Positions 5,709-17,700 of a DNA stretch of 64,000 nt are shown piece by piece. Source of the DNA: Fimbriosthenelais zetlandica (Eukaryota); the NCBI GenBank assembly GCA_977030845.1, contig OZ365109.1:43524001-43588000 (forward strand), given 5' to 3'. Positions within the stretch are counted from its first letter, which is position 1, and every line of letters begins with the position of its first letter. The position numbers were made by a program, and so were the translations under genes. The notes beneath the pieces are model-generated. The model was not told where the DNA came from and made no database searches. It saw nothing but the letters and a program-made list of their open reading frames with translations.

Positions 5709-5771
5709 CTAAGGTGCATGGCATTGTGGAATGGCATTTGGCTGACAATTGTTGTTTGAGAAACACTCTTC
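5709..5771 (-). CDS. Sema2a: Cassette B terminal exon 18[21 protein letters not shown]-stop
   Basis: tatttacag acceptor, phase 0, TAG at 5709-5711. Confidence 0.88.
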   Translation of the reverse strand, partial: EECFSNNNCQPNAIPQCHAP

Positions 5772-8700
5772 CTGTAAATAAAAAAGAAAAAAAAATCTTT
5801 CAGATTGGGAAATCAGATCAATAATTTATTGGACATTGGAAATTTTAGTATGATTTTTACTATTTTAAAGAAAAGCAAGAAAAATAGATGCTTCATAAAC
5901 TGTTGAAATTTTATTGTATGACCACCTGAAAATACTCCGAAATGGAGGAATGGTTAATAAAAGTGTTATAAAAACTAAAAAAGGCCATTGAATACCTTCT
6001 TCTTATACATTCGCTTATTTCTTAGAACAGAATATGACATGGTAAGCAGGACTTTCTTACCTTGACACATAGCCAGTTGTTGAACTCTTTCCTGTACTTA
6101 TCAAACTCGCTGCACCAATTACGGAACTCTGTTTGCCATATACAATCAGCATCTCTACAATCTGTAATTAAACAAAATTAATATAAATATTAAAATACTG
6201 AGACTTCATTGAATGCACTAAAAAGAGAAAAATGTATTCATGATCATTTAGTTCAGCATTTGTATTTTACAAATGAATGAATGAATGAAAAATCCTAATA
6301 TTAAGGGAAATATATAAAAATAAAAAACAATCTAAGTGCAAGTCTATGATGAAACCATTATTTTGACTCACCAGGTATCCTGACATCGTAAGCAGCTAAC
6401 CAATATTTGCCGTCGCTAACACACATGTAGGAGCCCTCATCACTCTTGGTAGCATTGAGGATGACCATACCATAGTCCTCAGTAAAGATATACTTGTGGT
6501 CCTCGGAGTAGATGGGTTTGTTCCTGTACCACCACTGGACTGGTTGTCTCGGTTCACACATGGTGTCGCACTTGAGGTGTATAGGGTCTCCAGCAACGCG
6601 CACCTCCATTGTTTCCCATCCTCCTGTGGGTGATTATTTTTCATTTCACAATTAAGATTTTATTATTTCCTTATAATTATATATATCACTTATATTTTCA
6701 CATTCATTTTATTAGATAATATTTTTTATATCATTATGTATATTTTTCTTCTTAATTCTAGGTTTCGTAACTTGAGATTAATCCTTTTGTACATACATGG
6801 AATCCTGCATTAAATATCATAGATTCAACTTATACATTAGGTAAATTATATATGCATTTTTACTCATAGGGAAAATAGCTAACGAATATATGTTATATTT
6901 TGTTATGTTCAAAATTTACTTACGGAAGCAGCTTCCGACTTCGTTGCAAACCTCGATAGACGGGCCTTGTAGACCTTGTGGGAGACTGTTAAATAAATGA
7001 GAAAATTATTTTTTTTAATTCTCTATGGAATCACCTGCAGCCTTAGGCACTGAACCATGCATGTGCACTAGGGTCCCATTTCAGAAAAGAGATGCTCAAT
7101 GGCTTATATAGCCCATCTTTCTTCTGAAACAGGTCTCGGTTCCTGACTTGATCACTCGCAGGCTTCATTTAAAGCCCTTAAGTTTGACGAATTTGGTGAA
7201 AATATTTTTAAAAAGAAACTTACCCAGGTGAATACATCTCACACCTGTCTCTAGCCTGGTTCCAACCACAATATGGGTCCAGAACACAACTGGTACAAAG
7301 CTTGTAATTGTTGCATTGTGTCACCCGAAGTTGAACGACTTCAGAGTCCGTTCCCAGGTAGAGGTAGCTATTCTGTAGTAAAAAAATAAAAATGGCAAAC
7401 CCTGAAAGATCCACTTCATACTAATATAAACGTCTCACGTAAGTTATTTAATCTCTTTTCTTTTAACCAATAAATCTTGGATTAGCTTAACGAAAAGGAC
7501 AGCAATTTAGATATACAATAACCAGCATGGGGGAAAAATTTGATCCTGATGCATTCTGGTCCACAGCTTGAAATCCCAATCATTTGCGGTCGATACCAAC
7601 ATCCTTTGGTTTCAAAGTGGAAACATGGTTTATATCAAAATCCCTAAGTAGAAAGTTCTTCAATAAATAACAATCAATAGACAATCAGCAATTTGAAGCC
7701 CATGCAATGGAATCAAGTAGGGATTTTGTGGCAATGGAATGGATGAAATTCAGTTCATTCGATCAACGGATTAAATCTTCATTGAAAATTAACATAATTG
7801 ATTGAAATCAATTGAAAAAGTAAAAATAATGATGAAAAATGAGGCAATAAAAAGAAGGGACATACAATGGGCAGATACCTGAATTCCAGATTTATTTTAT
7901 GATTGATTTTTAAATTGATTTAAAAATCAATTTTAATTTGTTTATAAAAAATAAATGTCAGGGCAATCCCAGGATATAAGGAGAGACCTACCTCAATGAA
8001 GTCTCCAACATTATATAACCATATATAAATACGATAAATCATAAATGGAACAAATCAAACGAGACGAACTGAAATATTGGAAGAGGACTCTAATAGATAT
8101 ATATTTTTATTATCCTAAATAAATTACAGCAAAGATTGTAGGAAAGGTTTATTGGCCACAATTTCATATGGGTCATTAAGCCTTTTGACATACAAACATC
8201 CTTAAGAATGACAAACCATAATCATAGGAATATAGGTTCAAAATATACATTAGAAATGGCGAAGTCGTTCAACTAACCATGGAATTACATATACTGCATT
8301 CTCAACTGCATATATGAGATAGTAGAGCAGGGGACACCCTTTATATACACAACTCAGAAAGATTGATTGATTGTAAAACATACATTGAAATAAATCCATC
8401 AGAAATGGTTAATTTAATTTTTTTAAATTATTTTACCTCCTTATTATTTTTAATAGGAGGATCACTCAATAAAAGCCTTGGGACTAATTTATATCACTAT
8501 TAATAACTGAAATATTAACTGTGGACAGGAAGCAAATGTCGCAGTTTCTTTTGGCCATAGCTAAAAAAAATCCAATTAGAAAATCCCTTTAACCTGAAAC
8601 ACCACAGCCTGCTGCAGATTGGTTTAGAATTTCTTGTCACTATTGCATCGAACAATCAAATGATTATCTCCTCTTATTTATCTGCCTAGACTAAATACTT

Positions 8701-14700: not shown

Positions 14701-17700
14701 CTTTGGCCTAAAACAAGTCAAGAAATTTTGTCCAGTACGTTGGTGTCCAGAATGGGGCAGATGACGATAATAATGACTACCAATTATCTACCTGACAACA
14801 ACATTGCATTGAACGAAATCACTCAAAATGACATATTTATAGCATTGGAACGAAACACCAAGTAGTCTGTAGGCATCTGGTGTTGCCTCTTGCTGACACA
14901 AACTATTACTTAGATGCTTGAAACTTTTTGCCAGTTGCAGAATAAACTGATTATATATGCATATATACATCAATATACATACATAAATAATGGGGTGAAC
15001 AATACAAAAATAATGCTTGATCAAAGCACAAATGGTATACATATAATGGGGGATGATGGGGGTGTGCAGGCAAGGCAGTTACAGTGAAACACTTACAAAT
15101 AGCGTCATGCTCCAGATGCGTTTCGCTTCGTTGTCAAACGGTTTCCAGATGGCGACGATCCGGGTTTTCCTCGCACCGCTCTCGTCCGCATATTCAGCAA
15201 CTTTGTATATTTGTCCTTTATCTGGAAAACATAATAAAGGTCATGGATACTGTCATGGATGCATGATTTAGACAACCAGTGGAAGTCATGGCTACATGAT
15301 TTAGAGAACCAGTAGAGGTCGTGGATACATGATTTAGACAACCAGTGAAAGTCATGGATGCATGATTTAGACAACCAGTAGAAGTCATGGATGCATTATT
15401 TAGACAACCAGTAGAAGTCATGGAAACATGATTTAGACAACCAGGAAAGGTCATGGATACATGATTTAGACAACCAGTGGAAGTCATGGATACATGATTT
15501 AGACAACAAGGAAAGGTCATGAATGCATGATTTAGACAACCAGTGGAAGTCATGGATACATGATTTAGACAACCAGTAGAAGTCATGGATGCATGATTTA
15601 GACAACCAGTAGAAGTCATGGATGCATTATTTAGACAACCAGTGGAAGTCATGGATACATGATTTAGACAACCAGGAAAGGCCATGGATACATGATTTAG
15701 ACAACCAATAGAGGTCATGGATACACGATTTAGACAACCAGTGGAAGTCATGGATGTATTATTTAGACAACCAGTAGAGGTCATGGATGCATGGTTTAGA
15801 CAACCAGGAAAAGTCATGGATACATGATTTAGACAACCAGTGGAAGTCATGGATGCATGATTTAGACTCATTTTACTCTAAGATTTAGACAACCAGTGGA
15901 AGTCATGGATACATGATTTAGACAACCAGTAGAGGTCATGGATGCATGATTAGAGTGAAGTCTGTACCTGTGGCTAGGAAGTAGACAGTATAGTCTTGTT
16001 TGGTGGACACCCGGTCAACCACCATGCGTGTAAAGATGACCCCAGCCTGGTAGTAGAGAGGAGCTCGGCCCTTGGCGTTCACTGGTTGAGACATGAATGG
16101 GTGACGCTCGATGAAATGTTGATCGCTCAGAGACAGGGTCTGACTGTCTGCGATACACTATAAACAGATGACAAGAACATTTAAATCTGAAGTCGGAAAT
16201 TTAAAACTGAACAATCAATATCCTGAAAACAATAATATACAGTTTTTATTGTATCATGTAAATAAGTCGAAATAAAGTTTTGAAATTCAAATCATGAAGA
16301 AAATTCACTTATCTGATTTAATTATTTAATTAATGTATGTAGGCTATTTTCGTATTAATGGTTTTGCTACCGGTATCTATGGAAGTATCTGTATCTATCT
16401 AGTCATTTATTCATGTACTATATTTATTCAAGATATGCAATCATAGTAAGGAATATAATCACAAGTAGGCTACCAAGACAATATTTTTGGTCAAGAAATC
16501 AGAAAATAATATGTCGCTGAAATCTTGACACAAAACAGATGTCTGCTGCTCAGTCTTTCCAGACAGAACATGGCCCGACAATGTACATTGTTAAAATATC
16601 CCGTCTTAGTATTTCTCGAAAGGCTATGAATGATACTAACCGTTCCAGGGTGGGGGCCTGAGCCGGTAGGGGCGTTGACAACCGTCCAGGCACTGTTGGC
16701 ATACTCCCAGAATGAGCCACGGAACACGACGTCTGTCTCTGTCAGGTTGAACGTACAGAGTGCTGAGCCAAACAAACCGTTACTGTAAAAGACGAGACAG
16801 AGAGAGGAATGAGGTCTCATGTCAGTCATACCATCATCAGCGGGGAGGGGGGGGGGGTATTTAAATGAGCCATTGAGAAAAGATGCATGCAGTGGTCTTT
16901 ATAAGGAGGTGGTCGCTTCAGTTACAAGGGGGTATTTTAAACATATTATAATTTAAAGGAAAATGGGACAAGACAAACGCACATATATATCCCAATGACT
17001 CAGTATTGATTATACCAGTTTACAAAATACTTCAAATTATTTGAATTTAATAACTTAATTTAATTTTAATTTCATAACTGACCTGTCGGTTGTGAAGAGA
17101 CCCACAAAACGGTTGTCACCGAGTTTCTTTACATCTTCTGCAAAAGTATTGAGAAACAAGTAAGAATTTGGATATTATAAAGACTTGTTGCCAGAATCTT
17201 AATTGAAAAGGCAATGGATGGTATGCAAATGTCGCATGATCACAATTAATGGAAATTGACTGAACAAGAATAAATTACTTAACATAAATAATCAATACAC
17301 AATTATAATTATGATTGAAGTTGAATTACAGATCTTAAAGCCAGGAAACAAAATCTAACAAGAAACTTCGAGATTCTTCAAGTTTAGAATTTGTTTCTTT
17401 CCAAAATGAAGGCGATTACGCAACACATTGAGAGGTGATTTGTCTCAGTGAAATAAGCAGCTTACGTATTTCATTGAAGTAGAAAGGTTTGTCTCCGGGT
17501 ATGGAGCAGCTGAGGCGAGCTTTGAGGAAGGTGGTCCATTTGTTCTTCAGTACTGAGTTCGTCCCGCGGTCATTCTGTTCAAACCGGACGGGAAAAGGTT
17601 AATCCGTCATTTGACGGGCCATGACATTTACACAAGGCTAGAGACAAAGGAGGGGCTAGAAGGACTGATTGGCGCTGGTCCTGGGGCAGAGGGCAAGGCA

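Follow-up and report, generated by a model that had tools for sequence, protein, structure and literature searches.

One Sema head and two probable alternative PSI-Ig-tail cassettes in a class-2-like semaphorin gene of Fimbriosthenelais zetlandica

The DNA analysed here is a 64,000-nt stretch of the Fimbriosthenelais zetlandica genome (contig OZ365109.1, positions 43,524,001-43,588,000 of the forward strand), hereafter the window, in which a semaphorin gene lies on the minus strand. Nine exons of its Sema head were mapped, spanning 21384-15097, and they precede a microexon and two cassettes of five exons each, A and B. The gene was compared with a second, deeply diverged species (L003/L005), a third species (L002) and a contiguous, mRNA-like relative (L004). 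Its features, in window coordinates, are as follows.

Near 43163-43060: one candidate N-terminal exon, the most upstream exon located.
15966-21384, minus strand: eight more shared Sema-domain exons, at about 21384, 21075, 20692, 19359, 18228, 17583, 16784 and 16157 (tblastx against L002, tblastn against L005).
15097-15221, minus strand: exon 13, the last shared Sema-domain exon, 125 nt, with an AG acceptor and a GTAAGT donor, ending in phase 0.
14468-14500, minus strand: a 33-nt microexon, phase 0/0, encoding 11 aa and lying after exon 13 and ahead of the cassettes, with a CAG acceptor and a GTAATT donor.
14076-14467, minus strand: a conserved block of intron on the 3' side of the microexon (comparison with L003 and L002).
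13049-9842, minus strand: cassette A, five exons with AG acceptors, GT internal donors, open frames and its own stop.
12901-13049, minus strand: exon 14A, 149 nt, the end of the Sema domain and the first part of PSI (Pfam PSI, E = 8e-7).
11287-11348, minus strand: exon 15A, 62 nt, the end of PSI and the PSI-Ig linker.
10764-11015, minus strand: exon 16A, 252 nt, an Ig-like domain (Pfam I-set, E = 1e-7).
10208-10308, minus strand: exon 17A, 101 nt, the Cys-rich tail with a WCxEFDxY motif common to fly Sema2a.
9842-9910, minus strand: exon 18A, 69 nt, the terminal coding part and stop.
7373-9841, minus strand: the A-B spacer, presumably the 3' UTR of body A and then the intron to 14B (from hexamers).
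7372-5709, minus strand: cassette B, five exons with AG acceptors, GT internal donors, open frames and its own stop.
7224-7372, minus strand: exon 14B, 149 nt (splice sites, Pfam).
6924-6985, minus strand: exon 15B, 62 nt (its L001 equivalent has 95% aa identity).
6372-6623, minus strand: exon 16B, 252 nt, an Ig-like domain (orthologues P0033/L001, P0151/L003 and P0057/L002).
6061-6161, minus strand: exon 17B, 101 nt.
5709-5771, minus strand: exon 18B, 63 nt, the terminal coding part and stop.

The ten cassette exons of the initial annotation were thus all reproduced, in coordinates, sizes, canonical splice sites, phases, open frames and separate stops. Its gene model, which led from exon 13 to the cassettes, is incomplete, the conserved microexon at 14500-14468 having been overlooked. 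Pfam assigns the head exons to Sema. Exon 13 is conserved in L002 and L003/L005 and occurs once in the window, and every head exon tested is single-copy both in the 64 kb and in L005; the second copy of the head exons that a whole-gene tandem duplication of the Sema2a/Sema2b type would leave was found in neither.

The domain order recognised by Pfam in the window is Sema, PSI and one Ig-like domain, as it is in L004. When compared to solved structures, the Sema exon matches only 6QP7 and 6QP8 (Drosophila Sema2a and Sema2b), the PSI exon reaches 37-38 bits with these two and at most 25 with other semaphorins, and L004 gives 119 and 98 bits with 6QP7/6QP8 against 68 with Sema4D and 55 with Sema3A. 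A WCxEF[DE]KY tail motif is also common to the window gene and fly Sema2a. The class-2 assignment made from the letters alone is therefore upheld at the level of scores against solved structures and of the shared tail motif. After the Ig domain, A continues for 55 and B for 53 residues as an acidic Cys-rich tail (pI 4.9 and 4.85, respectively) with 7 Cys, and neither body displays a transmembrane segment, a GPI signal, a hydrophobic stretch or a basic class-3 tail. The predicted product is a secreted, class-2-like semaphorin. Database searches with single exons added little: a profile search of representative proteins with the Ig exon returned mostly giant multi-Ig proteins and two useful short exon-level matches, while word-indexed protein searches gave no candidates for the A tail and A Ig exons and two genomic exon calls only for the B Ig exon. 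The Atlas yielded generic Sema clusters only, and Rfam a tRNA only. The tail motif was not found in the supplement of PMC6374515, and the Aplysia Sema2A in the alignment of that paper is too diverged or partial for comparison.

Both cassettes contain PSI and I-set/Ig domains by Pfam, and they are 56% identical in protein. Exon by exon the identity is 65% (PSI), 43% (linker), 45% (Ig), 77% (tail) and 60% (terminal), the first four values being close to the roughly 66, 40, 48 and 79% first reported. As had also been claimed, every cysteine is kept, with 17 out of 17 in register between A and B. Protein similarity remains strong in tblastn between the two (E 1e-20 to 1e-24 per exon), and at the DNA level 17A/17B (76%) is the sole exon pair with visible similarity. 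No third copy of the cassette was detected by tblastn in the 64 kb. The start of exon 14A/14B aligns to residues 506-521 of fly Sema2a, within the CDD Sema domain (30-521) and ahead of PSI (525-569), so that approximately the first 16 residues of each cassette belong to the Sema domain. Since each body opens inside that domain, each should need the head and neither should fold without it. The two products had been proposed to have an identical propeller; the head is indeed shared, but the last Sema stretch is cassette-encoded and the propellers are not strictly identical.

The microexon peptide is identical in L003, and the microexon differs from that of L002 at just two positions, both synonymous third positions. 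Its residues have no equivalent in fly Sema2a or in L004, and it is probably alternative. Downstream of it, the intronic block retains 73% identity to L003 across ~500 nt despite saturated synonymous sites, and two GCATG motifs (~14166-14161 and ~14108-14104), by consensus candidate Rbfox-type sites, are invariant in all three species. The block is also present in L002, which has one cassette, and we found no regulatory sequence that would act specifically on the choice between A and B. With respect to RNA pairing of the docking/selector type, exact complementarity of the intron block to sequence upstream of 14A and 14B extends over 9-11 nt at most and is not conserved in L003, and no inverted repeats link these regions.

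We then considered the relatives, in which a search with tblastn had been proposed as a check. The one-head, two-body layout recurs in L003/L005: its head exons, with ~74% aa identity to the window, are single-copy, the microexon is present, and two cassettes follow, both intact, of which cassette 2 is of B type. L002 has no A, and a lone B-type cassette comes directly after its exon 13 and microexon, which indicates that the B acceptor was ancestrally joined to the exon 13 donor. Exon 18B has the same 63-nt length as its counterparts in L002 and in cassette 2 of L003, and it shares the ending QCHAP with L002, while cassette 2 of L003 ends in QCEAP. The Cys count is 17 in all six cassettes compared, and the Ig domain has a conserved N-glycosylation site. 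A maximum-likelihood tree separates window A and L003 cassette 1 from window B, L003 cassette 2 and the L002 cassette with a bootstrap of 96, and joins window B to L003 cassette 2 with 99. The last two Cys of the terminal exon are separated by 8 residues in the A types and by 7 in all B types and L004. Together, the tree split and the extra A-type terminal residue argue for a single origin of A-type and B-type cassettes across the two species. Window A is 52% identical to L003 cassette 1, no closer than to the B types (56-58%), and the grouping of these two could partly reflect long-branch attraction; L004, when added, sits on a long branch with low support and does not fix the root.

Synonymous divergence is saturated in all pairs (pS 0.72-0.90). 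By contrast, pN is 0.12 between B orthologues, 0.31 between A orthologues and 0.046 for window B against L001. The comparison of dN and dS that had been suggested as a check thus finds both cassettes constrained, with pN far below saturated pS, and, together with the intact frames and the kept cysteines, it bears out the initial view of an old duplication under purifying selection. At such divergence neutral exons would have decayed, so the open frames and intact splice sites are not those of neutral sequence. B evolves at approximately the rate of the head, and A is ~2.5x faster than B at non-synonymous sites, chiefly in the Ig domain and the PSI-Ig linker. Judged by these rates, B is the conserved body and A is an old, fast-evolving duplicate which is still constrained.

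We conclude that this is probably one gene in which a single Sema head is followed by two alternative cassettes at the 3' end. The anatomy, conservation, constraint and head dependence come from the sequence comparisons, and from them we infer a splicing choice between A and B. The locus has the anatomy of alternative last exons: one upstream donor, two downstream sets, compatible acceptors, own stops and downstream hexamers. Transcripts would start from a single promoter-proximal head and be spliced from exon 13, with or without the microexon. On the first route, splicing would proceed to 14A and through 15A-18A to the stop, with a poly(A) site ~1.4-1.7 kb beyond; on the second, the transcript would skip the acceptor of 14A and the poly(A) site of A and use 14B-18B. 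Either route would yield a complete Sema-PSI-Ig-Cys-rich-tail protein. As the exon 13 donor, the microexon donor and the 14A and 14B acceptors are all in phase 0, the microexon is compatible with either body and up to four products could be made. The poly(A) sites are putative and are read from hexamers: the first AATAAA/ATTAAA hexamers lie 1.4-1.7 kb past the A stop, for instance at 8153, while after the B stop they occur only at 2 nt and 2.25 kb and do not place the B site.

The same phase compatibility would allow the cassettes to be used in series in some or all transcripts, 17A (which ends in phase 0) being joined to 14B to give a Sema-PSI-Ig-PSI-Ig protein, and other A/B chimeras would stay in frame given the identical phases of the two sets. 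We regard this as improbable: the Sema-domain residues of 14B would have no propeller to pack against, a doubled body is known neither from class-2 semaphorins nor from the relatives (L002 and L004 each have a single one), and in both species A ends in a terminal exon and stop of its own. In our judgement slightly less credible still is a separate transcription unit, in which B, or in principle A, would have a promoter and first exon of its own within the spacer and encode a small PSI-Ig-tail protein, leaving the semaphorin with one body. Neither tblastn nor the head-exon copy test detected a Sema exon in the A-B spacer, and a heuristic scan for a phase-0 ATG, a hydrophobic stretch and a consensus donor gave no signal-peptide-like first exon in the spacer of the window or of the second species. 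These searches bear out the earlier statement that no Sema or signal-peptide exons lie between A and B, its signal-peptide part through a heuristic scan that could miss a weakly conserved first exon, and signal-peptide first exons are short and poorly conserved. However, no conserved block is shared between the window spacer and L003, B opens inside the Sema domain and evolves at the head rate, and a B-type cassette is the sole semaphorin body in L002.

That one cassette is a silent relic is very unlikely. The faster non-synonymous change in A is what such a reading can draw on, but frames, splice sites, the 17 Cys and the glycosylation site are kept in both cassettes at saturated-pS divergence, and a pN of 0.31 or 0.12 is far below the pS of about 0.8-0.9. 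An assembly artefact, in which a second semaphorin gene or haplotype had been collapsed or joined wrongly, can practically be dismissed, as DNA identity between the copies is only 62%, the window is without any N, and the same order and spacing are found on an independent long contig of another species, that of L003/L005.

The preferred reading, a single head with alternative 3' cassettes, can be set beside known systems. Drosophila Sema2a and Sema2b (6QP7, 6QP8) display the same Sema-PSI-Ig-short-tail architecture and are two ligands with a similar head; in the fly these are two whole genes, whereas here the duplication behind one head is confined to the final five exons, and the window gene differs further from fly Sema2a in its tail with 7 Cys and in the extra microexon lacking in the fly. 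Alternative 3' terminal cassettes are familiar from other genes. In the immunoglobulin heavy-chain C-mu/C-delta and in Drosophila lola, broad and fruitless, a common 5' part is spliced to one out of several multi-exon sets further downstream, and the sets are tandemly duplicated and have their own stop and poly(A) site. The choice is documented there by transcripts, while here it is deduced from gene anatomy, and the module that would be swapped here is the extracellular PSI-Ig-tail of a guidance ligand. In genes of the Dscam1 exon 6 type, one of several tandem duplicated coding units is chosen through docking/selector RNA pairing, but the units are single internal exons; here they are whole five-exon terminal sets, and conserved complementary docking/selector sequences were not found. 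Finally, in FGFR2 IIIb/IIIc an alternative Ig-domain sequence alters the partner specificity of a signalling protein, secreted or at the cell surface as in the present comparison, through a single pair of mutually exclusive exons for half an Ig domain, as opposed to the terminal multi-domain cassette seen here.

With regard to function, roughly one fifth of the fly Sema2a dimer interface comes from its Ig-like domain, and Sema2a is able to form heterodimers with Sema2b. By analogy with this role of the fly Ig domain, the likely effect of cassette choice would be changed dimer pairing or changed partners of the Ig domain and tail, the plexin-binding face being left unchanged. A more ambitious proposal, which we advance tentatively and with less confidence than the two-cassette gene itself, is that of an ancient, conserved system in which one promoter serves a slow B-body and a fast A-body ligand, each with or without a conserved Sema-loop microexon directly ahead of the cassette junction. 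A/A, B/B and A/B dimers of co-expressed chains, with different partners, would then be possible, and one gene would do what Sema2a and Sema2b do together in insects.

Semaphorin diversity is usually put down to gene duplication. In this gene the doubling is limited to the tail and to the Ig region, which contributes to the dimer, and both bodies have been retained for a very long time behind one plexin-binding head. Even for Drosophila, whose Sema2a and Sema2b act through one receptor with opposite effects on guidance, the role of the PSI-Ig-tail is an open question. Should A and B both be expressed, the gene would be a natural domain-swap experiment on the role of this region in class-2 semaphorins. 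Altogether, the contrast between a conserved B and a fast A, together with the microexon and its GCATG motifs, offers testable handles on isoform function and regulation.

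The initial annotation had described one Sema head followed by two complete bodies, the five-exon PSI-Ig-tail cassettes A and B, and this stands, since both cassettes are intact, no third copy exists anywhere in the 64-kb window, every definable Sema head exon is single-copy and the window contains 0 N bases. Coordinates, sizes, splice sites and stops all agree.

Features of the semaphorin gene (window-relative positions)
about 43060-43163, minus: N-terminal Sema exon (motif '...YLYVGSM')
15221-15097, minus: exon 13, last shared Sema exon (125 nt; AG acceptor, GTAAGT donor; ends on a codon boundary)
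14500-14468, minus: microexon (33 nt, 11 residues, phase 0 at both ends)
14076-14467, minus: constrained intronic block of ~400 nt, directly past the microexon
13049-12901, 11348-11287, 11015-10764, 10308-10208, 9910-9842, minus: cassette A, exons 14A-18A
7372-7224, 6985-6924, 6623-6372, 6161-6061, 5771-5709, minus: cassette B, exons 14B-18B

The first four exons measure 149/62/252/101 nt in both cassettes, the terminal coding part 69 nt in A and 63 nt in B; the bodies have 210 and 208 aa, respectively. AG is present at each acceptor and GT at each internal donor, and each set has its own stop. Pfam places PSI in exons 14A/14B and the I-set/Ig domain in exons 16A/16B. The two proteins are 56% identical overall (PSI 65%, linker 43%, Ig 45%, tail 77%, terminal exon 60%), with 17/17 cysteines in register, while nucleotide identity is 62% across the coding alignment and 43% at third codon positions; DNA-level similarity is still recognisable in the tail exons only (76% over 113 nt). 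The N-terminal Sema exon, the most upstream one recognised, lies >21 kb upstream of the next, so that the gene covers 37 kb or more and includes one or more very long introns; a first exon with signal peptide was not found. Nearly the whole intron upstream of exon 13 is occupied by a 33-bp minisatellite (15252-15951, ~21.5 copies, 83% matches), whose unit, a multiple of 3, gives rise to an open frame of 219 codons by which ORF-based gene finders could be misled. Nested inverted repeats in the 14A-15A intron (11456-11934; 140-nt arms 82%, inner 55-nt arms 85%) resemble a MITE-type insertion; another inverted pair, smaller at 36 nt, lies within the presumed 3' UTR of body A (9519-9713), and a tRNA-Asp (GTC) gene is found on the minus strand at 2363-2434, 3.3 kb past the B stop (Rfam 60 bits; ARAGORN).

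Among solved structures, the Sema and PSI exons have their closest relatives in Drosophila Sema2a and Sema2b. Bodies A and B have neither a transmembrane segment nor a basic tail, and the window gene has the motif WCxEF[DE]KY in common with the fly Sema2a C-terminus. These data, structure matches and tail features, support a class-2-type semaphorin. All that the protein searches returned were gene calls at exon level, on eukaryotic contigs lacking annotation, and we compared these contigs with the window. Another relative, L004 (JGI Ga0099805_1616800, nt 1-2436), filed as 'metagenome', is in reality animal sequence: an intron-less, mRNA-like contig with one frameshift near nt 1240, encoding a distant, full-length Sema2-type protein (signal peptide, Sema, PSI, Ig and the same Cys-rich tail) that ranks Sema2a > Sema2b > Sema4D > Sema3A > Sema7A > Sema1a. 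L004 shows that the 7-Cys tail with its WCxEF[DE]KY motif is conserved as a module within this group of semaphorins.

The same architecture is present at a second locus (L003/L005; ENA ERZ25767047, 428-kb contig), where nine head exons, one copy each and ~74% identical to the window in amino acids overall, are followed by the microexon, cassette 1 (149/62/249/101/75 nt) and cassette 2 (149/62/252/101/63 nt), both intact, with canonical splice sites throughout and a stop of their own. Judged by sequence, cassette 2 is clearly B-type (79% identity to window B, same 63-nt terminal exon). Third-position GC at this locus is 0.73 in cassette 1 (2233-6376), 0.54 in cassette 2 (8530-11375) and 0.63 in the head, a difference not seen in the window (0.51, 0.53 and 0.54). 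A third locus (L002; ENA ERZ26222911, 1-Mb contig) carries exon 13, the microexon and one B-type cassette (Ig 64% identical to B vs 49% to A; 63-nt terminal exon; last five residues as in window B), with no further cassette in the 1.6 kb before or 9 kb after it; either it split off before the duplication or A was lost. A closer relative, L001 (Logan ERR14368248), has B-type linker and Ig exons.

In a five-sequence ML tree, window A and L003 cassette 1 separate from window B, L003 cassette 2 and the L002 cassette (bootstrap 96), window B grouping with L003 cassette 2 (bootstrap 99); these splits exclude an independent recent duplication in each species. The A-type copies are 52% identical to each other and 51-58% to B types, thus equally distant, and the root of the cassette tree stays unsettled when L004 is added. 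However, the last two cysteines are separated by 8 residues in both upstream cassettes vs 7 in all B types and L004, and this one-residue insertion, together with the identical gene position, favours a single origin of the upstream cassettes. Every comparison shows saturation at synonymous sites (pS 0.72-0.90), while pN is 0.31 between A orthologues, 0.046 between window B and L001, and 0.27 between A and B within the window. Between B orthologues pN is 0.12, so that the outcome named initially as refuting, dN/dS near 1 for B, does not apply. B evolves about as fast as the head, A much faster. Across the six cassettes compared, 17 Cys and the N-glycosylation site in Ig are retained and the pI stays acidic; given this and the low pN against saturated pS, both bodies are functional coding sequence.

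A blastn match between a related locus and the window revealed, in the intron following exon 13, an exon overlooked by the initial annotation, the 33-nt microexon, whose CAG acceptor is pyrimidine-rich and whose donor is GTAATT. Its peptide is identical in L003, and L002 differs only at two synonymous third positions. Window and L003 agree at 73% of positions over ~500 nt surrounding the microexon and extending downstream, in contrast to the saturated synonymous sites of the adjoining exons, and the intronic block holds two GCATG motifs, one as TGCATG, invariant in 3/3 species (window, L002, L003). A GCAUG located past the exon is the consensus layout of an Rbfox enhancer, and the microexon looks like an Rbfox-type regulated exon that would insert a loop into the Sema domain immediately ahead of the cassette junction. 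Fly Sema2a has no residues at this position, and in L004 the exon-13 equivalent joins the exon-14 equivalent directly; we therefore read the microexon as probably alternative. With phase 0 on each side, it would fit in frame with body A as well as body B.

From the gene structure, A and B should each be joined to the single head by splicing. In L002, exon 13 and the microexon have a B-type PSI exon as their immediate partner. A free-standing PSI-Ig protein starting at exon 14A or 14B is unlikely: the first ~16 residues of both exons, presumably the final strand of the propeller, match positions 506-521 of fly Sema2a, where CDD assigns 30-521 to the Sema domain and 525-569 to PSI, so that such a protein would start inside the Sema domain. 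In agreement with the initial annotation, which had seen no Sema or signal-peptide exon between A and B, the spacer (2.5 kb in the window, 2.15 kb in L003) holds no Sema-like exon in the window, no phase-0 ATG/hydrophobic/consensus-donor exon in either species by heuristic scan, and no block conserved between the two. The first canonical poly(A) hexamers past the A stop (1.4-1.7 kb in the window, 1.1 kb in L003) sit upstream of 14B, as expected of a proximal terminal exon set. No element explaining the choice between A and B was found: the acceptor tracts look similar, and neither conserved intronic sequence adjoining 14A or 14B nor docking/selector complementarity was detected.

Tandem-duplicated alternative terminal exon sets are well known from immunoglobulin C-mu/C-delta, lola and broad, and the cassettes here would be of the same kind. 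Literature searches found no report of alternative 3' bodies in semaphorins; surveys count a single Sema2 gene in an annelid and likewise in a mollusc, and Drosophila has two whole genes (PMC6374515). The one-head, two-body semaphorin is conserved and probably functional. Body A differs from body B mainly in the Ig domain and the PSI-Ig linker, PSI and tail being better conserved. Of the homodimer interface in the structure of fly Sema2a, 21% is made up by the Ig-like domain, and Sema2a/Sema2b heterodimers form and retain PlexB binding (PMC6695400). Most economically, the two bodies would alter dimer pairing, or binding through Ig and tail, while sharing a common head.
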